Assembly: GCA_051294905.1 (NCBI GenBank) | Contig: CM119378.1 | Span: 6,448,001-6,512,000 of the forward strand | Direction: 5' to 3' | Length of the DNA: 64,000 nucleotides | Source: Botryllus schlosseri | Lineage: Eukaryota | Shown here: in pieces, positions 550 through 64,000 of the stretch | Layout: the number at the start of each line of letters is the position of its first letter | Position numbering within the stretch: the stretch's first letter is position 1 | Program-made: the position numbers and the translations under genes | Notes under the pieces: generated by a model | What the model was told of the DNA's origin: nothing | The model's input: the letters and a program-made list of their open reading frames with translations, nothing else | The model's database searches: none

Positions 550-1283
550 ATGCTACTAAGCGCAAGTAAGGCGTGCCTTCTCGTTGGTCTCATACTGTCA
601 GCTAGCACAGTAACCGGACAAAACGCCGTAACAAATCAATCGGTAAAGTCGACCACCACCATTCCTACTTCTCATCCGAGATTCGCAAGACTCACGGTAC
701 GAGGAGAGTGCGGAATATCAGCAAAGCTCTTCAACGCCCTGAAAGATGTAAGCTGCCCGTACGAAGGATCGGGGAAATCTCTGTTGAAGAGTCGCAAACA
801 AGAGTTACGGTGTTGTGCGCTAGTCACTGCAAACTTTGAAATCGAATGGAGCCACGGGGGATCCTATTTGCAGACTTATTTAGAGAAACTCAAGTTGTGG
901 CGTTGCTTCGAACTTGATCATGTCTGCCGGACGGAGGTGTATTCGCGGTTCTCACAGTACTCCAATCTTTCGGTTATGTATTACTGCGACAATGCAAAGT
1001 TTCGAGAGATTTGCGCCCTCGAACTTTCGTCTGCCCGTGGACTTCCAGTCGGTACCGACTGGGAAAAAGCGCTGGACGGGTTTGTTCCATCTCGCTACGG
1101 CCCTGATACCTTGGCGAAACCTTGCATTCAAGTTGCGTCCTACCATTCTGACTCGGGTGGATTGGGATACTACCACGAAGTTGTTCAGGCGCATACGCCT
1201 TTCTGCGACATTTCGTGGTGCGGCTTTGACACTGCGTCGATTGATAAATTTGCACTATCAAGTTGGAACTGCCTCTCTTCATC
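550..1283 (+). CDS. GPCR gene 1, exon 1: signal peptide + cysteine-rich ectodomain
   Basis: ORF 529..1287 starts with TTG; first ATG at 550 (MLLSASKACLLVGLILSASTVTG, signal-like). Cys pattern shared with five paralogs (CC..W..C..C..C..C..PC..PFC..WCG..WxC). Donor TC|GTAAGT at 1284, phase 2. Confidence 0.9.
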
Positions 1284-1518
1284 GTAAGTACATTCGTATT
1301 CAAGGCCCGTTGTTTGTATTTTGAGCATGCCAGTCTGAGAGGTAGGCTTTTCTATGCTGTATTTGATGAGACTAATTTTCCGCATGGAAAACCGAAGCTG
1401 CTCGTGCTGCGACATGCCAATGACGCTGCAGAAAACAGCGTGCATTTGACAGAAGAAAAATGGAACTGCGATCGTTTTGAAGCTAGATTTAGATTTGGAC
1501 TTAAGAATGTGTAATAAT

Positions 1519-1913
1519 TCGGGCAAGCAAATAGTTACATTTAATTTTCACAAAAGTCACACAGAAAAGTTGCATTTATGTGCAAGTTCCTTGAAATTAT
1601 TAGGGTATGAGATACTCGGATCGTTGCGTATCCAAGGCACTGTAGCAAAACTCAATGTTGACGACTTCAACAAAGTCAATAGCCTGAAAAAATTGATCCA
1701 GTCAAAATATAATTTTCGGCGGTCTAGCCTGGATGTACGTCAAATCAGAAAGGACCTCAAATTCAACGACAGTGAAATAATCAAGCGATCTATTTACATA
1801 TAGTGCCAGGTATTAGTTGGTTGCATAAAAAATCGAAAACAGTTGGAAAACGTTGCATGAAAAATTGAAAAGAGTTGCAAAAAGTTGCATGAAAAATCGA
1901 AAAACTTGCCCTA
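1519..1913. mobile_element. Degenerate hAT-type MITE in gene 1 intron
   Basis: Ends TCGGGCAAG / CTTGCCCTA; flanks GTAATAAT / GTAAAAAT (7/8); internal GTTGCA/AAAATCGAAAA subrepeats at 1815-1910. Confidence 0.5.
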
Positions 1914-2272
1914 GTAAAAATGTAATTCCCATGCGACTTTTGTCCTTAGCGAATATTGACTTGGATTTGGATATCCTATACGAATGAAGTCTTGATTCAA
2001 AAATTTAATATGCGTTTTATCTCTGAAACCGAGCAGTACAAGTAGCCTACGTCTGCAGTATATGGTTAGCGGTTAGGTCAGATATCTGCATACTGATGGC
2101 ACGCCATTTTTCATTCAAGCAGTGTCATTTAATTATAGATACCTAATAAATCAATAGATATTTAGCGTAGGCGATGTCGTTTATTGATGTTCTGCCTCCG
2201 GTAATGACGCTATTTCCCGCCTTCGCGGAACGATTAGAAAGTCCCTGTAATCAACAAACTTCACTTTTGCAG

Positions 2273-3635
2273 GTGTCAGACAAGCCTAATCATCGCCTGC
2301 GTAGTATGCGGTCTCCTGGCGTTCGCGATCGTCCTGGCGAACATCACCGTAATCGCCGTGTTCACGACGAGTCCCAAACTTCGAAACAGCCAAGCGGTCT
2401 ACAAAATATCGCTGGCGATCGCTGATTTGATAGTTGGGATATTTGTGATACCTACTTTCATATCGTCGCTACTGCTACTGCATAAATCAGGTTTCAGCAT
2501 GGGGGAAGTTATTGCGAACGCTTCACACAACAGTGTCGGCGCAGCGAAACGTTTGCCTGCGTCTGGAGGCCTAGTAAGCAATTTTACAACGGAATATCTC
2601 AACTTTGTCGGTTTCTTCACCATCCTCTCCTTGATGGTATCCATTTATACTCTTATGCTGGCCAGTTGCGATAGATTCATGGCGATTTACCAGCCTCTGC
2701 GGTACGGCAGACACAACGCGAAAAGGATCGCGACTTGGGCGTCGCTTCTACTCTGGGTGATCGCCATATTTGTATCGGCCCTGCCTCTGTTTCTGCCCGA
2801 GTTCAGCTTCGGAATCGCAGCATCTATTATGGTGGCGGTAGCCAACAGTGACGCCGCGCTGTTCTATGGAATAATTTTAATAATTCCGTTGGTGCTTGTT
2901 TGGATTTCCACGATAGCTACATACGCGTCTACATTGATGCACGCTTTCAAACGCAGGCACTTGACGGTACGGAGGACCAATAGCGGAAGCAGAACTGCCA
3001 GCAACATGGAGACTAGGCTGGCGAAGACGCTAGCTGCAATGGTCGGCGTGTTTACTATCTGCATCGTCCCGCCTGTGATAATGCTTGTAGTTCCGCTTTT
3101 CGTGCCGAAATTACTCCCATTCTGCGTTGACACGTTTCAGCCTTACGACAGCAAAGTTGTCGTGTCTGCCGAATTTGTCGCCATCTTGCTGCTGATGACC
3201 AACAGCCTGTGGAATTGCCTCATATACAATGCTCGAAGTGAGGATTTCAAAATGACCGCGAAGCGTTTGCACAGAAGGTTTCTAGTCAGGATCGGAGCCA
3301 AGTATGTTTGGGGAAGGACCAGGTCTTGGGCTTCGACCACCATGCGATCGGGACGCCACAATTCATCGACTGGGCGACCGTCTCTGCGCAAAATGATCTC
3401 GAAGACATCGTTGCGCACCGTTTCCAGCGAACAGGGCACGGATAATCAAGACAGGAACAACCGAAACAGCACTGACGTCACTCGTACTTCTTCGACCGGA
3501 ACGAAAATCACGGAATTTAACCAATCTCATCCCGGGAAATACGCCGAAACAACCTCTGGAGAGACAAATAATGCCTTTGAGGCTCCAGCCATTCACGAAA
3601 CGGCCCGTGAGAACAGTGGTAGTGACATGGTTTGA
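2273..3635 (+). CDS. GPCR gene 1, exon 2: class A 7TM domain + long Ser/Thr-rich C-tail
   Basis: Acceptor TTTTGCAG|G at 2272/2273 restores frame (S|CQTSLIIAC). Seven hydrophobic helices; SLAIADL (TM2), ASCDRF (TM3), ETRLAKTL...FTICIVP (TM6), NSLWNCLIY (TM7). Spliced CDS 2097 nt = 698 aa + stop. Confidence 0.95.
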
Positions 3636-6703: not shown

Positions 6704-6843
6704 TATATTGAAGTTCTGTACCCCCGATAAGCTCGTTAATCTAAAAGTATTGACAAATTTTATGCGTCACAAAATGAATCCAAGTGTGCCAACCTGGGCA
6801 AGATGGACATGAAACTACTACTTGCTCTGATCTGGTGTACATG

Positions 6844-8826: not shown

Positions 8827-10048
8827 TCATTCGTTGGCATTGAAGCCATTGTTTTCTCTTGCGTAGCGATACACAATTGGAGACGGCATTCCCTTGACCT
8901 CGTCAGCGGGTATAGTTTCCGACCTTTTCGTAGGAGATGGCAGCGTCGTGGATAAGGTAGATTTACGCGACCTCCCCCGTAAAATCGACATCCCGTGACT
9001 GTTTTCTGCCGCGCCTCTCTTCCCATAAAACTTCCGGAAAACGACCAAGTACAGGTGTCTTGTGCGCCGCTTGAATTCTTTGCTTCGCGCGTTATAAATG
9101 AAGCAGTTCCACAAGCTGTTAGTCATCAGGATAAGTATGGCCAACAGCTCGGATGACGTGAATGCGGTGTTGGCAACTGGATCGAAGTCGCGAGGGTGAT
9201 CGGGGTCGATGTTTGAGATTCCGTGTGGCACTACAAGTGTGATGATCGCAGGTAGCAAACACAAAGTGAATGTTCCGACCATTGTCGCTAGAGTGCGCGC
9301 GAGCCTCGCTTCAATACTTAACACCCCTGGTTTGTTGCGCAGTCGTTCGCTTCGCACGCTTATATTGTTACGTATCAACGCCTGCTTTCGTGTTATGACG
9401 TAAGCGTAGATTGTGGCTATCCACATAATAAGAAGGGGTATTAACACAACGATTGCGTACATGACAAGGCCTGGTGTTTTTATGGAGACTATCAGGACAG
9501 ACGCCACGACTCCGTACGTCATGTCGCGGACGAAGATGGGTAGAGCTGAGAATAGGATCCCAATCACCCATAACGTTAGTGATGCCCATATCGCGACCCT
9601 TTTGGCCTTGTGGCGGATGTACCGTAAAGGGCTGTGTATCGCTAAAAGTCTATCCAGGCTGGCCATCATTAAAGTGTATATCGATACAAGGAGAGATAAG
9701 CTTGTAGAGAACCCAATGAAACTAATGTATTCCGGCTCAAATCGGAAAGCAGTCGGTGAAATTGCCTTTCGCGGCCGGTACCCGTCTGTATTAGGTTGAA
9801 CATTAGGAATAACATCTCCCAGCTCAAGTTTGTTCTGATACGAAATCAGCAGCGACGATATGATCGATGGCAACACCAGTATACCGACAACCAAGTCGGC
9901 AACTGCGAGAGACGTTTTGTACAAAGCTTGACTGTTGCGCAGCTTTGGAGTCGTTGTGAACACGAGTATAACTGTGACGTTAGCGATTACAATTGCGGCG
10001 GATAGCAAACCGGATATCACAGCTATTACGATGACTCCTGCCTGGCAT
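8827..10048 (-). CDS. GPCR gene 2, exon 2: class A 7TM domain
   Basis: Acceptor TTTTGCAG|A at 10049/10048 (R|CQAGVIV). SLAVADL, ASLDRL, EARLARTL...FTLCLLP, NSLWNCFIY. Spliced CDS 1893 nt = 630 aa + stop. Confidence 0.95.
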
Positions 10049-10719
10049 CTGCAAAATAACATATGATGCATCACCATTAGCAATCGCATTGGTCGATAGG
10101 AATGGGCACAATGATTCGGGTGCTCGAATATGAATCGAGTATTTATTATAATGCTTCTCCTCGAGTAGGCCTAGTGAGAGATAATATTTCCTAGAGTAGT
10201 GAGAGATGCTCCTTTCGGATGTCAAAATATGGTAACCCTACTGTGGGGCACATGCGTAAAACCCGTAGTTTTTGAAACAATGAAATCTTAATTCACCACT
10301 TAATGTCGATTCCGATTATACTTATCTTAGTTATTTTAAACTATCTATGATATGGTTAACATATTTTGTGGATCAAATTCTGGGCACTCTTTAGCGCCCA
10401 CTAACGGATTCTAAAATTAGTTATGACATATTTTCAGTCAATGTGACGTCGCACTAACAAAGCTTTGCCTAACGACCAGAGGTAGTCACGATCCGGATCA
10501 GAAGCCCCTTCCCGCCAAAATTAACACTGATCTGGAACCCGCCATGGGTTATTCAATTCAATGACTACTTCACCTCGGAATCAAAAGCGCACAACTACAA
10601 CACACGCGCGTCCTCGAAGAACAACTACCAAATGTCCAGGAGTGAATACAAGAAAACGCATCGCTCTATCAAATATGCCGTGATGATGATGATGAACTTC
10701 TGGGGGGCTTACAATATGC

Positions 10720-11053
10720 CAATGTTGGGATGACTCGAGTCAACTTTTTCGTATGACTTGACTTGACTCGAGTCACTTTGCAAAAATGACTTGACTTGAC
10801 TCGGCGCTTCAAAAATTCGGATTGACTCGTGACTCGGAGCAAAATTTACGAGTCAATTTCAAGTCATCAAGTAAACGGTATCAAATAAATCACTGTATTT
10901 TGTATATGTTCGTATTGTTCGGGATACGCCTGTGTCACTTGTGACAGTAACCAGGCATTCACTGAATGTACGTTTGAATGATCCTCCACCATTGCATCAC
11001 AAATACATTGACCACAATCGAAATGATCACAGGTTATGTTGTCGTAGTAGTAA

Positions 11054-11092
<39 letters not shown>

Positions 11093-11710
11093 AAGAAGAA
11101 GAATATAATAGCAAAGTATCCATTTTCTTAGACGACCCTGTGCTAACATTGCCCAGTGATCACCTTTACCAACCCTCTTGTATGATTTAAATCTAGCAAA
11201 TATAGTTGATGCGTTTATTTTCTCACGGAAATGTAGACGGTAGTGTATTGTACCAGATCAATTTGTTACAACTTCTTGAGGCTTCGCATTCGATCCTATC
11301 GGCTGATAATAACAGACTGTAGCTTAGCTATGGAGTTAGTCGCGTGTTTTATTTGAGGTTCTACGTGTGCTTGATAGACACAACGCCTTCTTGCACACAT
11401 ATTCAACTTTACATTCGTTATTTGATGCAAGATAAATGGCAAATTGTTCTGTCTTTCTCACAGCTAGCAAAATGTAGTGACTTTGAATCGTCACTGATAC
11501 TTCGAAAATTCAATTTGACTTGAATTGTGACTTGACTCCTGACTCGACTTGACTTGACTTGACTTGACTCGAGTCACATCCAAAAAACGAGTGACTTGAC
11601 TTGACTCGAGTCACCTTCGAAAATCGATTGACATGACTTGACTCGAGTCAAAATGTGCAATGACTCGAGATGACTCGTGACTCGAAGGTGATGACTTGAT
11701 CCCAACACTG
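10720..11710. mobile_element. Non-autonomous hAT element in gene 2 intron
   Basis: TIR CAATGTTGGGA / TCCCAACACTG (10/11); exact 8-bp TSD CAATATGC; GACTCGAGTC/GACTTGACTC arrays at both ends. Confidence 0.9.
11044..11103. repeat. (GTA)n followed by (GAA)n microsatellite
   Basis: Directly visible trinucleotide run inside the 10720..11710 element; explains the poly-Val/Glu ORF 10978..11190. Confidence 0.95.
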
Positions 11711-13697
11711 CAATATGCATTTATTTGCATGCATCTGGTTATTAAATTTTGTGAATGAAGTATGTCAATTATATTGGTTATTCCATATATTACTATGAAA
11801 TTTTGATCCTCGTCTCTCCTGCCATAGTTAGCGGTAAATCTGATGGAGGATGATGGCTTCAAAAATACAGGGGACGAAATTGTTCAAGTGTACATCGTAA
11901 AGTCATGTTCATGTAACACGGATAAGACTATTTATGAGCCTAAATGCCGGTACGAACCAGCAGGTTGCATTCTGGTTGTTTTCAACCTTTTATGGTCGTG
12001 ACTCCATTTCCAACTTGGGCCTATAGTCACGGCGTATGATCGTTATTTTTATGTGGATTTGATTGCATTTTTGCGAGGACGGTGATCCCCACACTAAGTC
12101 GCGCGCAGCGCGAAGAAACATTGCAAGAGCAACAAATCTGCCCGAAAATAATATCTTAAATGCTGATTTTCGAAAAAACTTGATCCTAATTCAAAACCGT
12201 CAAAAATCCGGACATTTAGGTATATTTGTTAATTTCCTCCCGGAATCAAATCGTACAGTGAAATTCCGGACGTATGGCAACCCCAAAACTATGACCAATA
12301 TTTGATGAGGTAGGAGGCTGCACGTAAATCATTGATATCTCTGCAGATTCAAATGTTCAAGTTTTAACAGATTTTCTGTGCTTGGCGTTTGACCTTATAT
12401 AGCCACATTGCAAAGTCAAGATCGAGACACATGTTCCTAGTATAGTTCGGTTATTGAGCCACGAAGGTACTGGCAGTTGAAATGGACTTCAATCTGCGAG
12501 AAATTATTGACTCGGCAATATAGTACTCGGCGAAAACGAATACTTTCTGAATTCCATTCTGAATCGATTTTTCAACTCGGAGTCGATTTCGGGTATCACT
12601 CGTGATAGCGTCATGATAGAGTGAATTTCGTGGAAAGTTCAATATGTCATTTTTATACAAACACAAAGAAAATAGTACCAGTTCTACACTATATTATAGA
12701 TAATTTGGTAGCTTTTCGAGCATACCCACTTCATTGCACTTTGTGACAATGTTGTGGAAGTGTCGATTCAGCACGACTTCACTAATTCTCGTTGACATAT
12801 TAACTCTGACCAGGAAAGTATCGTTTCAGGACTCGAAAAAAATCCTCTCAACACTATTCGACTCGAATCATTGCAATTAACACTCGATTCGGGTGACTGA
12901 TAAGTAACTTTTTTACATTAGGGAAATGACGAGGCAGCTTCGCTTCAAACTGCTAATGTTTCAGTAAGAACATAAATAGAATGACCGTATAAGATTAAAT
13001 ATCCTACTGTGTAAAAACTGTAAACTCATTTTAATTGTCAAATTGCCAATAGCCTACTGATACAAACATATTGCTGTTTAAAGATGTTTTGTTGAGGTTT
13101 GTCGAAACTATTTTTTTTCAAGTCGGTCTCAAAAAAAGGATTAAACCTCATCACGGAATCCATCTTCTACCGTGATATACATAACCACTACTACAGAATG
13201 TCTTCAAGATGAGCTGCTATAGAAATGACTAGTCTGGACGTGGTATAACTCATTGATGTCAAATCGAAGGCGTGGATTTTCAAGACGCGGCCACCAAATT
13301 CAAGATATAAGAAATTCAGCTGCAGAATTCCTTCGAAATAATATAATTCCACCAAATTTCTACAAATTGTATGTTGTTCTTTTCAAAAACGGTCATTTCG
13401 TTACTGTTTATCATCTAGCCTTGAATTTATATTTGCACAAGACTGATGACGGTTACGCGATAATTGAACTAAATTTGAACTCAAGTTTGAGGGGTCCGCG
13501 AGGGTCCGTCACGGTCCAAAAGGTGTCCGCGAGTACAAGAAGGTTCATGACCACTGGCCTAGATATAATCGAGACCTGGCGTCAAATTAACAATTCAATG
13601 TCACTCCACGAAACATTATACTGGCGAACACATTTCGCGCGTCTCAGCCGGCGATTGTAGCGAGTCGTGTCCGCTGCAATTAACAAAGACTACTCAC

Positions 13698-14368
13698 CTC
13701 GACGGTATACAGTCCCAGTGGGATATCCCTCTTTCTTCGACAGTCTTCGCGTCGAACCCGCACCACACACTCGCACAGAACGGTATATCGAACGCGATAA
13801 CCTCGTGATAAAACCCGTAGCCACCAGAGGCGGATTGAAAAGCCGCCACTTGAAAGCAGGGTCGCTTCAATTCGGTCAAGGTGAATTCTGAAGAGTCGAA
13901 ATCGGCGGTGACGTTTTGCCATCCCGCGGACTCGTTAAGGTTACGAGCGCGGGCTATTTCCTCGGTGCATTTCCGTGGGAACTCCAACGTGTCGCAATGG
14001 TACAGGTAGAGTAGCTCGGAATATTCAGAAAATCGTGCGTACACCATGCTCCTACAAAAGCCGCGAATGTGTTGCCGGCAATCCAGCGCTTTTAATTCCG
14101 TGAAGAGATTTTGCAGATACCGTCCGCCGTGAAACCAAGACTTCCTGTAATCTAGTAGCTTCCGCCGGCAGCACGAAAGTCTAGTGTTGGAGTCGCTCAA
14201 GCAGCGGTGTTGTCGTAGTATTTGCTGTACTACATCTGTACCGGATCCGTTATTTTCAGTCGCACTGACTGATGAAGCTTTTCCATGAAGAGAGCATGCG
14301 AGCCCAGCGAAAAATACGAATCCAATCGCGCCGGATGCGTCCGCAGTAAATCGGAATCTCATCTGCAT
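13698..14368 (-). CDS. GPCR gene 2, exon 1: signal peptide + cysteine-rich ectodomain
   Basis: ATG at 14368 (MQMRFRF...GFVFFAGLACSLHG); family Cys pattern; donor AG|GTGAGT at 13697, phase 2; intron 3649 bp. Confidence 0.92.
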
Positions 14369-23825: not shown

Positions 23826-24484
23826 ATGTTTCAGATGCGGTCTAGTAAACGTTTGTGGGGTTCCTTATCTTCTGTCATATTGCTGTTTACTGCATGTGCA
23901 GTATCTCCAGAAAGATTTACCTATCGTAAGTCAGAAGTATGCATTTTGGATCATCCATATATCCACAAATATCCACAAATACGCCGAACTTGCTGCAACG
24001 ACGCTCGCAAAAAATATTACACAACGTGGAATACGATAGAGGGACCGCTGATGCAGTACTTTGAGAAGCTGGAGAGCTGGAAATGCGATATAATGAAAGA
24101 GGAATGCTCCAGGAGACCTTATGCCATAACTCCATACTCAGAGATGGTGTACAGGAGATTCTGTAACGTAACAGAATTCAGGAGAGAATGTTTGGATTCC
24201 ATCCTGCAGCTGACTACACGAAAATCTGTCCTGCCCCGGTCCAATGATTCGATTCCCGACGAAGAGTGGCTGAATATATTGAAACCATTGAAGGAGATAG
24301 CGACCACAGAGAATATTTACAAGAAGCCATGCCTCCAAATTGCCTTGCATGACGTAATGGAGAGCGGGAGATATCATGAAATAATCAACATCCAGATGCC
24401 GTTCTGCGCGTTAACTTGGTGTGGAATGACTGCAGATGTATCGGGTTTTGATAAAATATCAGACTGGACTTGCCTCAGCCGCGG
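23826..24484 (+). CDS. GPCR gene 3, exon 1: signal peptide + cysteine-rich ectodomain
   Basis: ATG 23826 (or 23835); hydrophobic SLSSVILLFTACAVS; family Cys pattern; donor GG|GTAAAT at 24485, phase 2; intron 287 bp. Confidence 0.9.
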
Positions 24485-24771
24485 GTAAATATTACGAGAT
24501 TCATAAAAGTGAAACATTGATAAAATAGATAAAGATATGCCGGTCAGTACCGGTACTGGCTGCCACCTGGAGATTCCTTGCATGTAGTCAAGTTGAACAT
24601 GGCTACCGATAATGACACAAACATAAGTTTGAATGTAAGTTACCGCTGTCTTAATCTCTATTGAGCTCATTATAACTTGTTTTTTTATTTGTATAATTCA
24701 TGACATCGATTGTGCATTGACCACTGCATTGACCACTTCATCTATTCTAAACCGTATGTATTTTCCTTCAG

Positions 24772-25810
24772 ATGCAGAGCAAACGTTGTGATTATCATCA
24801 TCACATGTTGTATCATGAGTCTTACCGTGATAATAGCAAATGTCAGCGTAATCACCGTATTCATAAGGACCAGAAAGTCGATGAACAGCCAAGGAGTCTT
24901 CAAGCTATCAATTGCATTCGCCGATCTACTCGTTGGGATAATAGTGATTCCGACGTTCATATCAACTACGTATCTGTATGTTTTCCAGAAACATACAGGA
25001 CCTTCCACATTGGCTTACACATCAAACTTCTCCAACAAAAGCTACAGCACTTTTCCGCCTAAATACCGAGCGTCAGAGGGATACTACGACACGGTGGGAT
25101 TTTTGACAGCGACATCCTTGTTTGTATCGGTCTACACGTTATTTATCGCTGGATTTGACCGATTGTTTGCAATATCAAAACCTTTGCGATTTAGAAGTTA
25201 CAAGACTAAAAAAATCGCCAAGTATTCGATATGCGTTATTTGGATTGCTTCGCTGATATTTGCGTCCATACCAATGTTCTCGCGACTAGACAATCTGCAA
25301 TACGGCATTCTGACAGGTGTATTCATAGCTCTCCGGGGCGAAGTGGCTATGATCATATATGCGGTTACTCTGTTTATTCCCACCATCATAACCTGGGTGA
25401 ATACAGCCTTGTTGCTGATTGCTATCAAGAAGCATTCGGCAGCAACGCGGGAGCTGCAGACCGCGGGTGAGGTTGAAAACCAAGATGGCGTCCGGGGAAT
25501 CGAACGACAATTGGCGAGGACCTTGATTATCATGGTCGGAACTTTCACTCTGTGCGTGTTGCCGATAGCTATCGTCGCAGCGACCCAACCGTTTATGCCG
25601 TCGGTCAACTTTGACTTTGTTCATATACCCGACGCGAAATCGTTGACAGCAGTGACATCGATTGAATTTTTATCGATCATGATTTTGGCGTCGAATAGCT
25701 TTTGGAATTGCCTCATTTACAATATCAGAAATAGGGATTTCAGACAGGAAATGAAGAAACTGTTCTCTATCCGAGGTACGACTTGTGAATCAACAAAGAA
25801 TCGCAACTGA
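24772..25810 (+). CDS. GPCR gene 3, exon 2: class A 7TM domain, short C-tail
   Basis: Acceptor TTTTCCTTCAG|A at 24771/24772 (G|CRANVV). SIAFADL, AGFDRL, ERQLARTL...FTLCVLP, NSFWNCLIY. Spliced CDS 1698 nt = 565 aa + stop. Confidence 0.95.
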
Positions 25811-26321
25811 TTTTATTACTCTTTTCTTCGTGAACACAATTTGTCTATCTTTAAGATGTCCTGATTGTCGCGTTTTTGAAGAAATTTTACTGTACTTATA
25901 AACTGGTACTCTCGTCAATATGTCTCTTCAACCATTTGACGATAAAACTATTGATTACTACAATACCAACAATCAAAATATATAGTGAAACTATTGGCAT
26001 ATTAGTGACAATTCTGACGCCATCTTACGCCCCAAGGCTTTATGATGATGTCTCCATCTCGCGGAAACAAACTATGTATGACGAGTACAGGATAATCTCG
26101 TGGTTCATTGTACGACCGTTTCTGCTGCTATGTAGTGTTTTGTTCAGAGGTGGTCAGTAACGAAGTACTTCTACTTTTTCGAAGTACCAAAATAGTTTCC
26201 CTACTTCTATTACTTACTCAAGTAGATATAATTTTCCACCACTCCTACTTCTACTTCGTCATATTTTGTGATTTACTTACGTACTTTTCACTATATTTGC
26301 AGTTTGTGAATTAGAAGTATT

Positions 26322-26332
26322 GAGCGAGAGAA

Positions 26333-26365
<33 letters not shown>
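26322..26365. repeat. (GA)n microsatellite
   Basis: Directly visible; a complementary (TC)n run lies at 26526-26547. Confidence 0.9.
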
Positions 26366-26366
<1 letters not shown>

Positions 26367-27328
26367 TGAGATTGAGATGGTGAAATTTAGAAACTGTTTT
26401 CTTTGAGTACCCGCCAACAATAATTTAATTTTCACAAAATTTAAAGTAAAGTCCAGAATGTTCGTCGTGCTTCGCCCGAAATATATGTAGGCCAAAGCAT
26501 CTCGTTGGTGCAGGCAAAAATAAGATCTCTCTGTCTCTCTCTCTCTCATCTTTGATCAAAATTCCTTGGATTGCAGCTTGCTAACACTCTGTAAAGGTGA
26601 CTGCAAAAAGACCCGTGAACACAAAAATAAGATAAATTTAGCATATAGTCGATAATTTGATTGATTCTGGAGAATGTTGCCAGCAATATCACACAGTTTC
26701 AATTGTGAATATTAAAATGCCTCGCCTCCGTCACCGCTACGTGGCTAGCCCGATTTGACTGACGTTCCCGCGCAGTGGCAGAGTCAGTCATTCCTAATGA
26801 AACCATAATGATATTTGAGTAGTGCGATGTCAAATCGTTCGTGAACTCAGAAGGTATATTCTGAACAGCTCAACATTACTGGATACGAATAAGCGGTGTT
26901 TATTAGCCGATAACTAGTCCTGGATCTATTTGAATGGCATGGCATTTCGCCGAATTGACATCATCATAAGTTACATATTTCGAATGGCACCAACCGCGCT
27001 CTGATTGATATCAATATCAATAATACAGTACTTATACCGACAGTGGCTCAGACAGGACTCATGCAAAATGTTATTTGTGTGTAAATTAGCATTGTGACGT
27101 CACATCGTCCCAGATGCTTCTGTTTAATTGTTCGGTGTTCGCAGCGAACATTCTATAACAGATCGTGTTCCCGAGAACCAGAGCCTTGTTGGGGATTCGC
27201 TGTTCGCAGTTGGGACCATCGCTCCGTATCGGTCCGTACCGTTTCACCTTCATGGCATCTCATCATCTGGGCATACGAGCATCTCATATAATGTGCATAC
27301 GAGGCATTCAAGCTGTAATTCTGCATAC

Positions 27329-28574
27329 TCATTCACCAGCTGTTTCAAGACCATCCAACTTTCTTACTGATATAACGGCCACTTGAGGATTTTTGTTATC
27401 CGGAAGCGGTAAATCGGCGGATATCGAGGCTTTGGAAGGGCGCGAATTTCTGCTCCCGCCACCCGATTTCGTAGAAGACAGATTCGTAAACGCCGAACTC
27501 AAGCTGGTGATGGTAGCGCGTCGCTGCGAGGACATCTTGATTCTTCTCCACAAATACAGCAGTCCAAGTTTGTCGGCAACGGCTCTCTCGATATCTTTGG
27601 AATGCTGTTTGAAATCTTTGTCTCTTGACCCGTAGATGAAGTAATTCCACAGACTATTCGTGGCGAGGATTACGACAGCGACCACTTCCGTCGAATTAAA
27701 AACCATAGTCGCGGTTTCGTTCAGGTGTTCTGGACCGTCCAAATGTATGTTGGAAACAAATAAAGACACGAGCAATACAACAATCACAGGAATCAGCGTA
27801 GCACTGAACGCCCCAACCATGACTGACAGGGTTTTTGCCAGTTTTCTCTCGTCACTGGCTATTTGTGAGTGGCTGATCGATGCTATCGAACGCCTAATGC
27901 TTGTGTACTTTTTAGTGTAATAAACGAGGGTAATGTTTGATAACCACACCAGAACTAACGGCAGTAGGAATATAACACAGTATAATACAACGGCATCTTT
28001 TGTACCTATGCTGATAATTACAGAGGCTACAATCGAATATGCAATGGAGCTGATGTACATCGGCAAAGTAGCCAAGAAAAGCACTAATATTACCAAAACC
28101 AGACAACACCATTTGGCTGCACGAAGAGCTGTGCTTCGTATGAATGACATTGGGAAGCAAATAGCGACCATTCTGTCAAAACTCGCCAGCATGAGCGTGT
28201 AAACAGAAATAAGAAATGATGCGATCGTAAAGAAACCTACAAAACTCATGTACCAGCGAGATAGGCTTGGGCCCTTTATGTCACTGGGTAAGCGCGTTGG
28301 AAGGATTCCTCGTGTTGTTTCGTCTATGACCGCTCCCGGATCATCCATTCCACTTTTGGTTGTGTACATCAAGTACATGGTTGATACAAAAGTGGGAAGT
28401 ACAATGGCTCCCACTAAGGTGTCGCCAATCGCCAGAGTAACCTTGTAAACGATTTGACTATTGTTCATCCGCTTCCGGTACCAGTACACTGCTATCACTA
28501 GCACGTTGGTGAAAAGTATTGCGATGCCCAAACAAATCATAACGGCCGCCACGATTGATATCCCGATTCGGCAC
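27329..28574 (-). CDS. GPCR gene 4, exon 2: class A 7TM domain
   Basis: Acceptor ATTACAG|G at 28575/28574 (R|CRIGISI). TLAIGDT, ASFDRM, ERKLAKTL...FSATLIP, NSLWNYFIY. Spliced CDS from ATG 30373 is 1971 nt = 656 aa + stop. Confidence 0.95.
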
Positions 28575-29648
28575 CTGTAATGTTAATCGATTGAGATTTT
28601 TATCTCAGACAATTTCTCACAATTATTTTCCCTCGAGGGAATTTCTTATTACCGACATATAGCGAGTAGGCGTCTAATTCATATTTGATTTGCTACATCA
28701 TTTTCGCCACTTTTCTCGCAGTAAATTGTATCATACCACGATTTCATACAAAGCAAGGCTTTGTGGAAGCGATAAATATGCACTCGTTCCATGATAGTAC
28801 AAGCATTATAAACGTCGATGCATGCAGTCTACATGTTGTTCAGAATTTACAAACCTGGTTGATAAACTACATTCACAGTAAATTCATTTATATGGCGAAT
28901 CTTCTGAAGTGGTGGTCAGTATTAGGTAAATTTTACCGTATCTAAATCTGTGTGCGATATGACGGCGACGTCCTAATCTCAAAAGATTTACGATGACATG
29001 GTATTGTGCACGGTACACCATGCCAGCTGCAGAAATCCCAATATTTATTTCATTAAAGAGGTCAATAAAAATACACAGAAGGGGTGACCACCATTTATAT
29101 ACATTTTTTTCGATCGACAGCCACACAGATACGGGCGATAAATATGAAACAAAGCAAGTATAAAATATTCTCTTTAGTTCTAAAATACGATGAATGGGAA
29201 ACCCCCGGAAAACAAGGCATTTGTTGAAGTTTGTCAATTCTGAACAACTCGAATGCAGACCCATAGAATATATCAGGGGTTCTTGAACCTTTACTATCCT
29301 GGGACTTAGGGAGCCCTTACGCTTATCAGCAATGCTGCAGCGAAACACAGATTTTCGATGAGTCATAAAAATAACATCTACCAAATTACTCGACAAATAC
29401 ATTACTATAGGATACTGGTGCACAAAATGACATGTAGATCAACGATAGCAATCATTAAAACATGTGGTTCAAACAATACAATTAGATTAGTTATCAGATT
29501 AGCAAAACGGTGAGACATTAGCTGTATGAGTATAATGTGTGTCTTGACTTCCAGCAATTCCCTGAGACTGACTCAGGGAGCTCCTGCAGTTCGTGTGAAC
29601 TGAACTAGACTTTATAATGGACGAATCGCTGGTACCTGGTATACTAAC

Positions 29649-30373
29649 CTCGCTGGCATGCACTTCCACACAGATACGTGATCTCTTTCGACCGTGTCTA
29701 TGTCGTAGCCGCACCACGAAAATCCGCAAAAGGGAATCACCGTCTTGATTGTTTCGTGATACCTTCCGTATCCCCCTCTGGCGCTTTCGTATAGAGCAAC
29801 TTGCACGCACGGGTTGGACAGCTCTCCGTATGACATATTTTCTGATCTTAGATGCTCCACCATGAAGTCCCACGTTTCGCTAGTCATGTTTGGTGCGGGT
29901 GAAGATATGTTGAACCTCCCGCCGGAGTGTGTTAATGCGGCGTTTTTGACGGCGTTAAAACAGTGGCGTTGGTAGAGTTGATTGGTGCATGCCCGCATGT
30001 ATACAATATTAGTGAAAGGCGAAAAATCGAAGAAACGCTTCTTGCATTGTTTCTTCATTTGCGGACATTTCCAAGTCTTCATTATATCCAAAAACGTGGT
30101 GAGATATTCGCTCCCGACGTACCATCGGGAATAGAAACGTTTCTCCCAAAACTGGCAGCACTTAATCTCTGCTCTTCTGTTCAGTTTCCGGTAGCCCGGT
30201 CGATACATGCAGTTGCGTATCTGCACTGTAAAGCCCGGCCTCAGTTGGGGAATTCTAGCGTCGCGCATTTCCAAGCTTTCGGCTCTTCGATTTGGCGTGC
30301 TTACATCTCCTGCTCGGCATAGGGCGTCGAAGGTCACAATCACCACGAGACATACTTGGACTAAACCTTGCAT
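29649..30373 (-). CDS. GPCR gene 4, exon 1: signal peptide + cysteine-rich ectodomain
   Basis: Met41 of ORF 29612..30493 begins a signal-like MQGLVQVCLVVIVTFDALCRA; family Cys pattern; donor AG|GTTAGT at 29648, phase 2; intron 1074 bp. Start codon choice is inferred. Confidence 0.88.
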
Positions 30374-53148: not shown

Positions 53149-53888
53149 ATGTATCATCTATTCCTCACTGTTTCGACCATCGTGATATCAGTTGGTTTTG
53201 CCGTACAATCCACATCGGGTGGACCTGATTTTCGCACTACCACAACCAATCAGTCGGACTATATCCTAACATCAATTCCACACAACCCATTAGAAGAGCC
53301 ATCGACAAGAAAGGCTTGTTCATCTGAAAGCAGTGTCGATATGAAATTTCGCAATGAGTCGGAGAAGGACGCTTGCTGTCGCGAAATCGTGGATTCCTTC
53401 AGTTCCATTTGGACTGGGATAGTGTATCGTATAACTGATTACCTTCGCATTTTGAAAATGCTGCGATGCCCGCAATTTCACCGGGAATGCGAACATCGTA
53501 CTTACGACTTCACCGAGTTTACCGGACTAACTTATGATCGATTCTGTGATGCGCAAAGTTACGATCAAAAGTGCGGTGCCGCCATCAACGAAACAATGCA
53601 AAAGCACGTCACTCGATTCAGTTCGGAGCCCGAAATAATCTCTCAAGCCGTCCGGAACAACACATCAGTTTCCAGGTTGAATTCATTGCGAAATCTAACC
53701 CTCGACATGGAGGACTTGTTGAAGCCGTGCGTCCAAGCTGGCTTAATCGATACTGAGCGCTGTGTCGAAGGTACATTTTATGAAATGAAAGAATTTCAAG
53801 CCCCGTTTTGCGGTTTGATATGGTGTGGATTCCCTGGGTACGCGTTCGAGAGTCATGAAATCTCCGAATGGACGTGCATGCCAAAAAC
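53149..53888 (+). CDS. GPCR gene 5, exon 1: signal peptide + cysteine-rich ectodomain
   Basis: ATG 53149 (MYHLFLTVSTIVISVGFAVQS); family Cys pattern; several N-glycosylation sequons; donor AC|GTGAGT at 53889, phase 2; intron 1884 bp. Confidence 0.92.
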
Positions 53889-53953
53889 GTGAGTTTGGGC
53901 ACATTTCAGAAAACTTCTTGACATATGTCTCTGAGCGTGTCGGGCACCATATT

Positions 53954-54865
53954 CAGGGGTCTCGCACTCAAATGTGATGGCGGGCCAATTTTCTAGAGTT
54001 TGATGGCGGCGCGGGTCCGAGCACCGAAACTAGGGGTATTCAATGTATTATGAATTTCCAAGTGGGCCTATTTTAAAGGGACCTTGCCGACTGGCCGTGC
54101 ACACCCAGCGTGAAAATGTGATTTCTATTCTGAATTCACGCCTAGCACGAATAAAATCAGACTTTTAAATATTTGAATAAAGTGTTTGTTGCACTTGGCG
54201 TAATTTGTCGAAATAGTTATTTTTATTTATAGACACGATGCTAGAGTACAAATGCATCAAGACACGCTGTCGCGTTATAATTTTTCAGCTAACGGCCATA
54301 TTACGTGCCACAATTATGAGTGGAATATTTTAGAATTTCACAAAGATTTATCCGATATCAGAGCATTGGAGCAGTACAGCCTAATGCGGGCTTCTAAGAT
54401 ACTCCTGATCCTGTCATGCCAGGGTGTAACTAACTATTTATACATCGAGGAGCATTCTTACTTTTCATTCAGTGTGCATGCCTCCTTTTTACTTCGCCTA
54501 TAGGCCAGGTGGGTGTCTGATGTCGAAGACTACTCCAAGTCGTTTCAACACCTTCCTATCTTGTATCGCAGTCTTGTGGTATATTGAAATGGTGAAATTG
54601 TTACCGATAATTGAATTGAATTGAATTGAATATAATTGAAAAAACACCTAATATGACGTAATAGCCGATCTTCCACCGAAAGTGATGTGATGGTGGATTT
54701 TGATGAGTAGTTTCAGGTTTTTTGGGTAATTTTAGAGCGAATTTCAAGTTCTCAAATCTCAAAATAAAGATACGTGGCATTTAAATATGTCGAATAATTC
54801 AAAATACAAAATGACGACGCGGGCCGCACAAATTAATCTCTCGGCCCGCGTGTTTGAGACCCCTG
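53954..54865. mobile_element. hAT-type element in gene 5 intron
   Basis: Ends CAGGGGTCTCGCAC / GTTTGAGACCCCTG (12/14) with GCGGGCCG motifs; no TSD recognisable. Confidence 0.55.
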
Positions 54866-55772
54866 TATAATACAGAGATGATGACATATCATACATAACC
54901 AATGGAATTCATCTATAAGTGGTGTAAAAATTGGACATGAAAAAAGGATATCAAAGTGGTTTAGCAAATATTGCTCTCTTAAATTTCTCTCACATTTTTA
55001 ATACCTCCGATGCGATTACGATTCCCATATACTCTAACTCTGATAAGCACTCATATTCTCTACAATGATATTATCTTTATATGGGGATATATCGCTAACT
55101 TCTTCCACGCGTGCTTACGTAGTAAAATAAAATAGGTAAATTATATATATATATATACACACAGGACAGCGGTTCTTAACCTTTAACATGCGTAGGCGAA
55201 ATAACGCGCTTACTTTTCGAAGACCACTCACTTAATTTACAAATATTCTGTTGAGCAGTTGGAAGCTATAGCTGAGAGGTTGATTTTCGAATATTTCCCG
55301 ATATACATATGAAACGTGATGACCTTGCAAGTTCATTTGCAAATTAACGTAACTTCGTTGATATTTCTTCAATGATCGCTTTTCACATTCGTATATCTCA
55401 AACCAAAAGTCTTGGGGTCCTGATGTTCCTTTGATTGCATTTTGGCGAACTTTCATTTTCTTACATGTGATGCTCTTGAGAATATAAGTAAGACCTCGGA
55501 GAATAATAGGCTAAAAAGCTGCAAGTGAAGTAAAGTTGTTTAAGATCTTGGGTTAACCTCTAATTAAGGATAAGGTGATATCCCGCCTAAATGATATATG
55601 TGACGCGGGGCGTGATTTCGGTTTTCATTCTAAATTTAAGGGGTGTGAAGGAATATATGGTTAGTTAATGCGGTGACAAAGAGAAAGTTAATAATCACTG
55701 ATCTAGGAGAAAACCATAGTAAGATTACCAGAACTTGCTTGTAATAGTTTTAACGCAATGCTATATTTTCAG

Positions 55773-56859
55773 ATGCCGCATAAACGTGTATATTCTGATG
55801 GTGGTTTGCGGAATTCTCGCCTTGGTGAGCGTCGCGGTGAATTTCCTGTCGCTAGTGATATTCAGCAAAAACCAGAGACTCCGAGACAGTCAAGGGATCT
55901 TCAAATTTTCGCTGGCTCTCGCCGACTTACTGATCGGACTGATTGTGCTTCCGTTAGGGATAGAGACGATGCGCCGCACTTACATGCCGGCGACTGTTCT
56001 CTTTCGGCCAGAGGAGCACGGGAGCTTTTATTTGAAGTTTTACACCTTCTCAAATCCGTACCATAATTTCGCTGGATTTTTCACGACGCTTACCAATTTG
56101 GTGGCGATTTTCACGTTGGTGATCGCAAGTTTAGACCGATTTATGGTTGTCTTCCGTCCGTTGCGTTACAATGTGTACACGGCGAAGTCGTGGGCTGTCA
56201 AACTTTCGATAGGCGTGTGGCTAGCATGCGTGTTATTGTCAATCATTCCGATAATTCATCCGAATATGAGATACGCGTTGATCGCCGGATTTTTAGAATC
56301 GCCTATGGGCGGTGACGAGGTCATTATATTAGCCATATATTTCGTTATCCCGCTCATATTGGTGGTTTTAATCCACGTCGCTACGATAGTGTACTCGCGA
56401 CGAAATGCCAGAGCCAGGCCAAAAGCTATATCGAATAGAAACAAAACAAAAGAAATTAACATCGAAAATCGTTTAGCTAAAACTCTCGGCATCATGGTGG
56501 GAGCTTTTTTGTTGTGTTTGCTGCCGCTTGGAGTCATGATAATAGCGCACGCATTTATGCCCGACATCAATCCCGCTCGGCCTAACCTACTAAGCCCTGA
56601 AAAATTGGTGATGATGTCATCTTTGGAGCATATATTTTGCGTTGTTTTTTTGTCTAACAGCATATGGAATTTTGTCATCTACAACGCGCGCAGTGCAGAA
56701 TTTCGGGCAGCTGCAAAGCGATATTATAACGGACTCGAGACTAAACTATTCTCTAAACTGAAATATTCTACTGCAGAGGAACGCAGAAGGAAACCATCTG
56801 CTGCGCTTTCGTCGTCTCAGGTTCCGTGCAACACTGCGTCGACGGCGTTAAACATTTGA
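55773..56859 (+). CDS. GPCR gene 5, exon 2: class A 7TM domain
   Basis: Acceptor ATTTTCAG|A at 55772/55773 (T|CRINVYI). SLALADL, ASLDRF, ENRLAKTL...FLLCLLP, NSIWNFVIY. Spliced CDS 1827 nt = 608 aa + stop. Confidence 0.95.
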
Positions 56860-57968: not shown

Positions 57969-58169
57969 GGTGGAGATGCAACTGCAGCAATCTTCCTGTG
58001 TTATTCCTTCGATAACTTTGGTAATTTATATATGCCCCTGTTACTTAGACGTTCGCGCTTACGTTCATGATGTTTTCGACTGCAGTGGTCATTTACACCA
58101 GATCGATATTCTTTATTATTATTTTTCCGCATCTGACACATAGCGTCAACGGTTAAACGTTCCCTACAC

Positions 58170-60954: not shown

Positions 60955-62017
60955 TTAATCGTAGGGTTCAACTTGATTTCGTTCAGCCGAAAGCGTTCTG
61001 GTGCTCCCAATCCAATACGACGACGTTTTAAGTCCATCGCTTAATGTTTTTCCCGCAACTCTACTTCGCAGGCCGTCGCCAATCTTCTTTCTCATGTCGC
61101 AGAACAGAGAGTACACGGAGCTTCGGAACTCCAAACTGCGGACATTGTATATGATAAAGTTCCAGAAACTGTTTGACATAAGTATAAACATGCCGATAGC
61201 TTCCAGCGTGCTGGCCGTTGCGTAGGCTCCCGATTCGTGTTTGTCAAAGTGTCTCCATTGCGTGGTATACGCTACAACCATGATAGCCAAGAGAGATAGC
61301 AAACAGAATGTAAAAGCGCCGACCATAATTGACAAAGTGCGCATTAAGCGTTTTTCACTCTCGCCGTCTACTTTGCCGCCGTCTGATGATGTTTTTTGGG
61401 CGTTACAACGATAATAGCAGTAAGTTCCGATATTCAATGCCCACATAAGTAAAAGCGGCGCTCCAATTACAGCACAGTATATGATTATCGCGAGCTCATC
61501 TATAAATGTGACTATGACTCCGTTAACACCGTAATACAGCGAGTCTACAATGAACGGCAGCGCTGAGTAAATGGAACATCCACCCCATAATATGAAAACA
61601 GACAACTTTGACAATCGAAACGCTTTATGCTTCTCGTAGTCGAAGGGGCGATAAACAACCATGAATCGATCGACACTTGCGATTAGTAGGCTGTACACCG
61701 AAACTGTAAGCGATAAATTTGTGAAGAATCCTATCGCTCCAACAACCTCTTGCGGTAATTTCGGATTAATCAGTATCCTATTCCCTGTGACTTTGTAGTA
61801 ATCGTAAAAATTATGCGCGACTATTACGACCATTCCCGGTAGTGCAATTAAGCCTGCGACCAGATCCGCGACTGCTAGAGATATCTTGAACACCCATTGG
61901 CTGTTGGCGGTCCGCTTCAGTCTGTAAAGGATTACTAGTACCAGGGTGTTTCCAAGCGTTACTCCGACGCTCAGCGCAGTCAGAAAGGACAGATAAATCA
62001 GTAGTGCGTCTCGGCAT
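60955..62017 (-). CDS. GPCR gene 6, exon 2: class A 7TM domain
   Basis: Acceptor TTTCTTTAACAG|A at 62018/62017 (R|CRDALLIY), open in frame to the listed ORF at 61893. SLAVADL, ASVDRF, EKRLMRTL...FTFCLLS, NSFWNFIIY. Confidence 0.93.
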
Positions 62018-62210
62018 CTGTTAAAGAAATGTTATCAGTAGGATGGATGTATAACCCTATATCTTAATACAGTGATTCGTAAGTATTCTGACATCAAAGC
62101 AGTCCTTATAGTGGATGCACAGATGAATTAGAGAATCGAATCAGGAGATTGGTCACTTAGGAGTCTTAGTAGGTCGTATTTTGAAGAGCTTCTTGGAGGT
62201 ACGGATCATA

Positions 62211-62564
62211 CAATTGAGTAGTATATTCAAAATTGAAATGAACCCGAATATTTTCCGCTGACACTCGTCAATGGGAATCGTCAGCAACTAGTGGAGAATT
62301 GGAAAGAACATGGCATATCAACAATTGTATCACAAAATATGACGTCACCAGCATGCAATTTCGAATGAGAAAGCGTTCAATGTGCTATTTTTAGATGGTA
62401 CAATAAAATGCACCAGCCAAGGCTGTGTCAACAAATAGAGTTCGTGTACCATCTAAAAATAATACATTGAACGCTCTCTTATACGACATTTCATGCTGAT
62501 GATGTCATATTTTGTGATACGATTGTTGATATGTTCATTTCAATATGGATATACTATTCAATTG
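62211..62564. mobile_element. Deleted copy of the TA-flanked MITE at 6190..6703, in gene 6 intron
   Basis: TA|CAATTG...CAATTG|TA; left arm and internal AAATAATACATTGAACGCTCTC shared with the 6190 copy. Confidence 0.8.
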
Positions 62565-62618
62565 TAGATCGTATTTTGTGATTTGCGGGAAGTAGGTTGG
62601 TAGCCAGTAATGCTAGTA

Positions 62619-63018
62619 CAGGGGCTCTTAAACTGGGGTCCGCATCCTAGTTTTACGGGATCCGTGGCAGCGCAATGTTGAAATACAACATCAAGAGACT
62701 ATAAAAAAGATTACGCTACTTTTGCGACCGACGCCGTGCATGGGATTGTGGCTGCCTTGCTTGGTTGTTTGTTTGTTTGGTTGGTTGGTTGTTTACTTAG
62801 CAGCTAATATGGGGCATGGAATAGCCTAAATTTAGTTGCACTTGATGTGAAGTCTTTTTTTCACCAGGTAGCTTTTTAAATCTCAAGTAGCCTAAATCGA
62901 GATTGTGGCGGAAGGGGAGACCTTTATTAGCCATCGGCTTCTGAAATTTTGGGGGTATACGCGCAGCCGCCCACAAAACTTGAAGGAGTCCATGATCAAA
63001 AAAGTTTAAGATCCCCTG
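62619..63018. mobile_element. 400-bp hAT-type MITE in gene 6 intron
   Basis: TIR CAGGGG(C/A)TCTTAAACT (15/16); TSD not recognisable; contains a GTTT/GGTT run at ~62761-62796. Confidence 0.65.
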
Positions 63019-63515
63019 GGCTAAGCTATCACCGCCTCATTATTTTTACACTTACACTCTGTTTCTATTAACCATGCCGCATGAGTTAATTACAATGGTC
63101 GAATTCGTAATTGCAAATGTGATGTGGTGTTGTGAACCTGAATCACAGTGATAAATTTGAGTTATGAAAATAGCGCGATCGCTTGTACGTCATGACATAG
63201 AGCGATAAAATCGACTTGTATTCTAATTCGAGCAAACTTTTTAACGTTGCTTTCATTTTCGCTTCACGACACACATACATACATTCTCTACCGGTTGCTG
63301 ACGATAAGGCTACCCCTGACGATGGCCAGCCGAAAATATCCCGGTTTATTTCAATAAGAATATATAATATTCAATTACATGTGTATGTGCGCGAGTGCAT
63401 TAGACACAGACCTTATACAGCTTGGTCTTTCTGTCATTTGTCAAATATAGTCCATAAAACAATAACTTAATTTGAAACAGTCGCTATCGCATCCAATAAG
63501 ATCCATCTTGCTTAC

Positions 63516-64000
63516 CTCGAAGGAATCAGTGTGGAACGAGACACGTCAAACTTGGTAAAAGCAGTTGTGGGAAAGGCAGTCCACACGATACCGCAAAATG
63601 GAAGGCCTGTTATCCTCACTTCTCGATAAGAGAACGACATACTTTTGTACCTAGCTACTTCCAGTAATGCTTGAATACATGGCTCCAGCAAGACGCCAAG
63701 TCCGTTCTTGGAATCGTAAAATGATCGCACAGTGATATTGCCAACGTCTGCGGCATAGTCTGAATATGTAACTCTGTCAGTAGGAATCCTGTAGCCCTGG
63801 AGGGCGTTCTTGCACTCGGTCTGGAAAACTGTGAAATTACACAGTCGCCAGTATACCAGTTGCGTATATCTCGTAACGGCGAAGATTTGATCCTTGCATT
63901 CTTCTTGGATGTCAGGACAGTTCATGTCTTTCAGTCTAGTCAAGTACAGTTGCAGCTTCGTCGATTTTACTCTCCAGCGTTGATGAAAATCCTTTTTCAG
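63516..64000 (-). CDS. GPCR gene 6, exon 1 (5'-truncated by window edge): cysteine-rich ectodomain
   Basis: Frame open from 64000 (LKKDFHQRWRVKSTKLQLYLTRLKDMNCPDIQEEC...); family motifs PC..Q and PFC; donor AG|GTAAGC at 63515, phase 2; intron 1498 bp. Confidence 0.9.

Follow-up and report, generated by a model that had tools for sequence, protein, structure and literature searches.

Six receptor genes of the tunicate LF-R family in Botryllus schlosseri and their apparently undescribed cysteine-rich ectodomain

The closest described relatives of the genes considered here are four Ciona receptors, Ci-LF-1-R, Ci-LF-2-R, Ci-LF-5/6-R, and Ci-LF-8-R, which were cloned and deorphanised for short Ciona-specific neuropeptides (Shiraishi et al., 2019; PMC6475428). 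According to the main text of that study, a Gαq16 fusion Ca2+ assay gave half-maximal effective concentrations (EC50) of 0.7-5 nM for the preferred Ci-LF ligands, most of the receptors are expressed in the siphons, and a urochordate-only "LF-R clade" including Botryllus and Oikopleura shows 21-26% identity to cannabinoid, adenosine, and adrenergic receptors. The same main text treats the receptors as plain seven-transmembrane (7TM) proteins: it describes no ectodomain, uses the words "cysteine" and "extracellular" not once, and has a single sentence with "N-terminal", in which replacement of that region is proposed, several candidate receptors having failed to express. The present analysis concerns a 64-kb stretch of the Botryllus schlosseri genome (contig CM119378.1, positions 6,448,001 to 6,512,000 of the forward strand; the window hereafter), where six class A G protein-coupled receptor (GPCR) genes, numbered 1 to 6, each encode a cysteine-rich ectodomain joined to a 7TM bundle. 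Their products are probably peptide receptors of the tunicate-restricted LF-R family. The family has been described before, and some of its receptors have published ligands; the six genes are new members of it in subclades that hold no deorphanised receptor.

Rhodopsin-type 7TM bundles that follow a folded extracellular domain are familiar from the glycoprotein-hormone receptors, LGR4-8/RXFP1-2, and the LDLa-GPCRs of Ciona (PMC2396169), but the ectodomains of those receptors consist of LRR and/or LDLa units with a hinge, whereas the window receptors give no LRR or LDLa signal, have a helical predicted fold, and lack a hinge because the cysteine at the start of transmembrane helix 1 (TM1) comes four residues after the end of the ectodomain. 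Frizzled and Smoothened likewise carry a helical, disulfide-rich cysteine-rich domain (CRD) N-terminal to their 7TM part, although theirs is a different 7TM class with a CRD-7TM linker, and no sequence or fold similarity to the window ectodomain is detectable. The class B1 peptide-hormone receptors, in which a disulfide-stabilised ectodomain and the 7TM bundle recognise a peptide, may offer a functional analogy free of homology; their extracellular domain is a small alpha-beta-beta-alpha unit with three disulfides and their ligands have 30-40 residues, whereas the known ligands of the LF-R family are short peptides.

Membership and history of the family

When 1.84 billion cluster representatives were searched with a profile built from the six ectodomains, 191 matched at E<=0.001, of which 91 reached E<=1e-30. 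Of the long proteins, 39 matched the domain near-completely, and in every one it lay N-terminal to the remainder. The link to the published receptors was made through UniRef, which identifies P0197 as the Ci-LF-1 receptor, P0200 as Ci-LF-5/6, P0201 as Ci-LF-2, and P0204 as Ci-LF-8. A search with P0197 retrieved the other three, and an ectodomain profile combining window and family sequences matches all four (E 3e-64 to 6e-54). The Cys3-Cys12 part of the cysteine pattern is evident in the Ci-LF-1-R sequence, and the search with this receptor also recovers P0002 (E 8e-99) and P0113 (E 6e-79), which belong to the Styela clades of genes 1/2 and of gene 6. The Ci-LF receptors are therefore like the window genes in protein family, in ectodomain, in the Cys11-x4-Cys12 junction to TM1, in length (575-624 aa, which is similar), and in their homologous 7TM part (37% identity between Ci-LF-1-R and Styela P0002).

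Every named member that was looked up is a tunicate protein, from Styela clava, Ciona intestinalis, Clavelina lepadiformis, Phallusia mammillata, or Botryllus schlosseri, with at least a dozen members per genome. The sole non-tunicate match, the 1117-aa leafhopper protein P0138, was rejected as a tandem-repeat artefact made up of 19 sub-threshold pieces. RefSeq models of three species unite ectodomain and 7TM part in one protein. In the databases these proteins are named "uncharacterized" or dopamine-, cannabinoid-, thyrotropin-, S1P-, melatonin-, or histamine-receptor-like; the receptor-like names look like automatic copies from the 7TM part and are not supported by its features.

A maximum-likelihood tree of 44 full-length members (unrooted, no outgroup, with supports from the Shimodaira-Hasegawa-like approximate likelihood ratio test, SH-aLRT) pairs gene 3 with Styela P0039, gene 4 with Styela P0023, and gene 5 with Styela P0054, each at 100, and places genes 1 and 2 in a clade with P0002, P0003, and P0004 (99) and gene 6 in one with P0113, P0116, and P0121 (97). 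The four Ci-LF receptors fall inside a separate 12-row clade (SH-aLRT 99) of Ciona, Clavelina, and Phallusia sequences only. At Styela clava OZ123517.1, 1-13046, P0002 (-) and P0039 (+) are divergent neighbours, mirroring gene 2 (-) and gene 3 (+); P0003 was not located on any contig. Because every window gene can be matched to a Styela partner or clade of its own and the gene 2/gene 3 neighbourhood is conserved, the cluster is, on this comparative evidence, old and stably inherited and not a recent local burst. Ciona intestinalis AP043569.1, 9950-16581, holds three same-strand tandem family genes (ectodomain E 1e-64 to 5e-55). As to the flanks of these loci, a sodium:solute symporter gene comes next after P0002/P0039 in Styela, and the Ciona trio directly adjoins a RIG-I-like helicase gene.

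The first-pass annotation, made from the sequence of the window, had proposed a lineage-expanded orphan family with a chemosensory, immune, or peptide-sensing role. The restriction to one lineage stands, all named members being tunicate, but four members have known ligands and the expansion is not a recent local one. Peptide sensing has gained outside support from the Ci-LF receptors, whereas no evidence has come forward for the other two roles. It is improbable that the window genes encode receptors of a chemosensory or immune kind, with an ectodomain that detects molecules of environmental or non-self origin, a reading that could appeal to their tandem clustering, to the family size per genome, and to the expression of most Ci-LF receptors in siphons, which touch sea water (main text of PMC6475428). 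The gene-for-gene pairing with Styela and the conserved neighbourhood speak against the rapid birth-and-death turnover typical of such families, and the members tested in the same study answer endogenous neuropeptides at nanomolar concentration.

Gene architecture and splice junctions

The open reading frame (ORF) listing of the window contains six pairs, in each of which a cysteine-rich ORF of 220-290 aa adjoins one of 310-425 aa that matches PF00001. When a GT after the former was joined to an AG before the latter, six intact two-exon genes could be rebuilt mechanically, gene 6 running past the window edge. Exon 1 encodes a signal peptide and the ectodomain of about 175 residues, and exon 2 a class A 7TM part, in all six. 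The introns, 287 to 3649 nt long, have GT donors and AG acceptors and interrupt the same conserved codon in phase 2 (..C-x-P-x-R|C..), in every model between Cys11-x3 and the residue preceding Cys12. Each of the six coding sequences has a length divisible by 3 (514+ to 705 codons) and contains no stop other than the terminal one. The earlier claim that each cysteine-rich ORF splices in frame to the neighbouring 7TM ORF is thus borne out by six GT..AG phase-2 joins, one of which, that of gene 4, is seen in RNA. A tblastn search of the window with the six models returned exactly these 12 exons and no additional copies or fragments. The gene orientations, +, -, +, -, +, -, were read as three divergent pairs, and the features are as follows.

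550..1283, + strand: gene 1 exon 1, signal peptide and ectodomain Cys1-Cys11; the ORF opens at 529 and its first ATG is at 550
1284..2272, + strand: gene 1 intron, 989 nt, GT..AG, phase 2
2273..3635, + strand: gene 1 exon 2, Cys12, 7TM, and C-terminal tail; PF00001 at E 2.2e-24
13698..14368, - strand: gene 2 exon 1, signal peptide and ectodomain, the sequence used for AlphaFold2
10049..13697, - strand: gene 2 intron, 3649 nt, GT..AG, phase 2
8827..10048, - strand: gene 2 exon 2, Cys12, 7TM, and tail; PF00001 at E 6.9e-26
23826..24484, + strand: gene 3 exon 1, signal peptide and ectodomain; Styela partner P0039
24485..24771, + strand: gene 3 intron, 287 nt, GT..AG, phase 2
24772..25810, + strand: gene 3 exon 2, Cys12, 7TM, and tail
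29649..30373, - strand: gene 4 exon 1, signal peptide and ectodomain
28575..29648, - strand: gene 4 intron, 1074 nt, shown removed by an RNA contig
27329..28574, - strand: gene 4 exon 2, Cys12, 7TM, and tail
53149..53888, + strand: gene 5 exon 1, signal peptide and ectodomain
53889..55772, + strand: gene 5 intron, 1884 nt, GT..AG, phase 2
55773..56859, + strand: gene 5 exon 2, Cys12, 7TM, and tail
63516..64000, - strand: gene 6 exon 1, its 5' part outside the window; ectodomain visible from the conserved Trp, with Cys10 and Cys11 replaced
62018..63515, - strand: gene 6 intron, 1498 nt, GT..AG, phase 2
60955..62017, - strand: gene 6 exon 2, Cys12, 7TM, and tail

The start of gene 4 is ambiguous, since the ATG at 30373 opens a signal-peptide-like sequence and an upstream ATG at 30493 also lies in the open frame.

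The junction of gene 4 is proven by a same-species RNA contig of 937 nt (run X2, record 15) that joins 28574 to 29649 on the minus strand and omits 1074 nt with GT..AG ends, exactly as predicted (joint as aligned 28572>29647, cut +2). The RNA check across the junctions that had been proposed with the first annotation therefore succeeded for gene 4; in gene 3, RNA depth is zero in the 24582-24772 bin, inside the intron, but no contig among the RNA contigs listed bridges it. Junctions 1, 2, 5, and 6 are indicated by colinear ascidian proteins and by the presence of the same intron in Styela and Ciona. All six models are colinear across the junction with full-length proteins from other ascidians, the gene 1 model showing 57% identity over 691 aa to the transcript-derived P0004. 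This 691-aa protein lies on a 2410-nt contig and the 712-aa P0007 on one of 3160 nt; both contigs are too short to hold an intron. The Styela clava P0039 gene has one phase-2 intron, at CLPT|RC, and the Ciona P0042 gene a 60-nt phase-2 intron at CVTE|RC. Among ORF-only database matches, 71 of 88 end one residue past the ectodomain, which is the mark of this intron because a phase-2 GTRA donor reads TAA or TGA. The phase-2 intron between ectodomain and 7TM part is ancestral to ascidians.

Against this background there is only the slightest chance that the gene models are artefacts and that exon 1 constitutes a gene of its own, encoding a secreted cysteine-rich protein and lying by chance beside a GPCR gene. 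Such an arrangement would agree with the immediate stop that follows read-through of the donor in five of the six genes and with the RNA contigs that extend past the donor of gene 3. The stop is, however, automatic with a phase-2 intron and a GTRA donor, and the spliced gene 4 contig, the P0004 and P0007 contigs with no room for an intron, the RefSeq models of three species, and the cloned Ci-LF receptor cDNAs, all of which carry both parts, contradict it. The donor stop codon was likewise set aside as a sign of a secreted isoform, given that any phase-2 intron with a GTRA donor yields TAA or TGA at that place.

Several further observations on RNA and sequence were made in the window. In gene 3, contigs from two RNA runs extend 38-58 nt beyond the donor and then end, and a GT lies at 24543; the sequence past the donor (24485-24543) may come from pre-mRNA, from use of an alternative, unproductive donor, or from a retained intron, in which last case the immediate stop after the donor would leave a truncated, secreted ectodomain. 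Short X1 contigs lie within the gene 4 intron (28817-28993 and 29108-29291) and overlap a 179-aa minus-strand ORF at 28884-29423. Downstream of the gene 4 stop, at 27230, an X1 contig lacks 10 nt that the window has, which probably reflects allelic variation in the 3' untranslated region. At 26143-26187 there is a motif of about 35-45 nt starting CAGAGGTGGTCAGTAACGAAGTAC, single-copy in the window, with contig depths that sum to about 13,000 in X1 and about 1,700 in X2; it has many differing flanks on both sides, is also matched by raw reads of two further runs, and may be a transposon end, possibly that of a miniature inverted-repeat transposable element (MITE), carried by many transcripts. 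An inverted pair of (GA)n and (TC)n microsatellites (26328-26378 and 26525-26547), passed over as repeats in the read search, lies between genes 3 and 4, and the 22-kb stretch at 30500-53100, between genes 4 and 5, contains no ORF above 111 aa and no family fragment. An Rfam search of the window gave no matches.

The ectodomain and its predicted fold

The 12-cysteine spacing of the first-pass annotation holds in genes 1-5, with Cys1-Cys11 in exon 1 and Cys12 as the first full codon of exon 2, before TM1. It does not hold in gene 6, which, besides being cut by the window edge, lacks Cys10 and Cys11 and has WTAF for WCGF and STLIPS for W-C-IPS. This joint loss is the commonest departure from the pattern among 108 family ectodomains, being the sole departure in 18 of them and accompanied by other differences in 3 more. 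In family alignments Cys1 and Cys2 also tend to disappear together, while Cys3-Cys9 are nearly invariant in both sequence sets and Cys12 is kept in 32 of 33 full-length proteins. Joint loss points to Cys1-Cys2 and Cys10-Cys11 as putative disulfide pairs.

Searches by sequence placed the domain in no described family. The six exon-1 products matched no Pfam family at E<=1, and across the 108 aligned ectodomains nothing was consistent: at most three members matched any one family, at E 0.12, with no LRR, LDLa, GPS, Frizzled, or folate-receptor match, in agreement with the earlier impression that LRR, LDLa, GPS, and Frizzled modules are absent. Against PDB sequences the ectodomain profile returned noise only (E>=0.18), and a word-indexed search with the P0002 ectodomain alone found two Styela proteins only and was uninformative. 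A search with a language model for look-alikes proposed a MAM domain (score 0.82), which was rejected because the score is within the chance range and the MAM fold is all-beta. A literature search for tunicate GPCR ectodomains found no description of the domain.

The expectation that the ectodomain would prove helical and disulfide-rich was met by the AlphaFold2 model of the gene 2 ectodomain, predicted from the 108-sequence alignment with a predicted local distance difference test (pLDDT) of 95.6 and a predicted template modelling score (pTM) of 0.89, in which a beta hairpin and one final helix come after about nine helices. Foldseek against the PDB gave a best E of 2.7 with template modelling scores (TM) of at most 0.23, a shape search of the ESM Atlas reached a TM of at most 0.35, a Foldseek search of the viral BFVD returned nothing, and VIA-align over 48,161 PDB chains found no fold match outside the family; VIA-align and Foldseek are able to overlook remote helical similarities. 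The clustered AFDB yielded only three GPCR entries: F6UX23, A0A6F9DI97 (Phallusia), and E4YX06, the last with a TM of 0.50 and a probability of 0.99. From the style of its accession, E4YX06 is taken here to be an Oikopleura protein. That origin would fit the Oikopleura relatives of the LF receptors stated in the main text of PMC6475428.

With the sequence and fold searches used, the ectodomain has no recognisable relative, and it appears to be an undescribed domain family with an apparently new predicted fold. The earlier view of it as a new module therefore stands on the Pfam, AlphaFold, and Foldseek checks, which found no Pfam family and no fold match outside the family. By contrast, neither the sequence searches nor the fold searches backed its suggested remote link to the Frizzled-CRD/folate-receptor/NPC1-NTD superfamily. 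It is now highly unlikely that the ectodomain belongs to this superfamily as a very divergent member, the likeness being a general one: a helical domain with about 10-12 cysteines and a CC...C-x6-C stretch, N-terminal to a 7TM part.

The seven-transmembrane part and a model of peptide sensing

The class A assignment of the first-pass annotation was upheld by the PF00001 matches of genes 1 and 2, only 7tm_1 and related class A profiles matching the 7TM part. Pfam scans gave no GPS match, and the receptors do not qualify as adhesion GPCRs, which have a GAIN/GPS domain and a class B-type 7TM part. In a two-domain model of Styela P0002 (residues 45-600; pLDDT 85.9, pTM 0.84), seven helices are formed and the ectodomain runs straight into TM1; the pTM suggests a defined orientation of the predicted ectodomain relative to the bundle. 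The modelled 7TM part is matched by Foldseek to beta1/beta2 adrenergic and A2A receptors with a probability of 1.00, and by sequence the nearest solved relatives are beta-adrenergic, alpha-1A, H2, 5-HT, and A2A receptors (E 1.6e-12 to 1e-7), with which the identity figures given in PMC6475428 agree.

The microswitches of 39 family members show what is shared with these alpha-group receptors and what is not. In common with beta-adrenergic, adenosine A2A, histamine H2, and 5-HT receptors, the family keeps D2.50 (39/39), the DR(L/F) motif (38/39), P6.50 (37/39), and N7.49 and Y7.53 (39/39 each). It differs from them at position 3.32, where Asp serves aminergic receptors as counter-ion for the amine and which is here Thr in 32 members, Ser/Ala in 6, Met in 1, and Asp in none; at 3.25, which is never Cys, so that there is no disulfide between TM3 and extracellular loop 2; and at W6.48 and P7.50, both absent from all 39 and replaced by L/I/V and mostly by C/F, respectively. 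Judged by these residues, the family is not one of amine receptors and its activation switches are unusual.

In the model proposed, the six window receptors would sense short secreted peptides through a layout in which a signal peptide is followed by an ectodomain of about 175 residues, with six predicted disulfides, a helical fold, and one beta hairpin, that leads directly into TM1 of a rhodopsin-type 7TM bundle. The Cys11-x4-Cys12 element would staple the ectodomain to the top of TM1, so that it sits rigidly against the outer side of the helix bundle instead of hanging from a flexible tether, and there it may form part of the surface for peptide recognition or gating. Such a contribution of the stapled ectodomain is put tentatively, at a little under an even chance. 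A bolder version, according to which the ectodomain is a new fold from the tunicate stem lineage that acts as the receptor's primary module for recognition of, or gating by, very short neuropeptides, with rigid coupling through the TM1 disulfide staple compensating for the loss of W6.48 and P7.50, is doubtful.

The ectodomain could instead be a structural cap, a folding or trafficking aid, or a built-in modulator, with peptides binding the transmembrane pocket as in ordinary class A receptors. This is a possible reading, albeit on the unlikely side. The Ci-LF peptides described in the main text of PMC6475428 are very short and could fit inside the helix bundle, and the expression failures and proposed N-terminal swap reported there hint that the N-terminal region matters for biogenesis. 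The ectodomain also diverges only slightly faster than the 7TM part: mean identity among the six paralogues is 28% against 33%, and ectodomain identity is the lower of the two in 81% of all family pairs. This slightly faster evolution is in itself no discriminator between a recognition role and a cap role. On the other side, retention of a six-disulfide domain in all the ascidian orders sampled, and apparently in a larvacean as well, would be costly if the domain were a mere cap, and the loss of W6.48 and P7.50 in every member suggests an activation route unlike that of standard peptide receptors.

A number of points weigh against reading the window genes as peptide receptors with an active ectodomain. 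The deorphanised clade does not include the six genes, which group with Styela genes in other subclades, so that short peptides are only their putative ligands. Any role of the ectodomain is likewise putative: the Ci-LF assays used whole receptors, and the peptides could bind wholly within the bundle. A docking interface and any pockets of the ectodomain would be predicted features, the packing being read from model scores, and of the six predicted disulfides only Cys1-Cys2 and Cys10-Cys11 are proposed as pairs. Direct RNA proof of splicing covers one of the six junctions, that of gene 4.

Peptide sensing through the LF-R family nevertheless remains the probable function of the window receptors, and the ectodomain has consequences for the family at large. 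At least about 190 related sequence clusters have in common with the Ci-LF receptors a large, conserved ectodomain of six predicted disulfides that is absent from Pfam and lacks a structural neighbour, which changes how receptors of the Ci-LF type should be modelled, expressed, and deorphanised; the N-terminal replacement suggested in the main text of PMC6475428 would remove it. The domain is a compact and confidently predicted candidate new fold for structural study, and the orthologue groups formed by the window and Styela genes can guide the pairing of ligands with receptors beyond Ciona.

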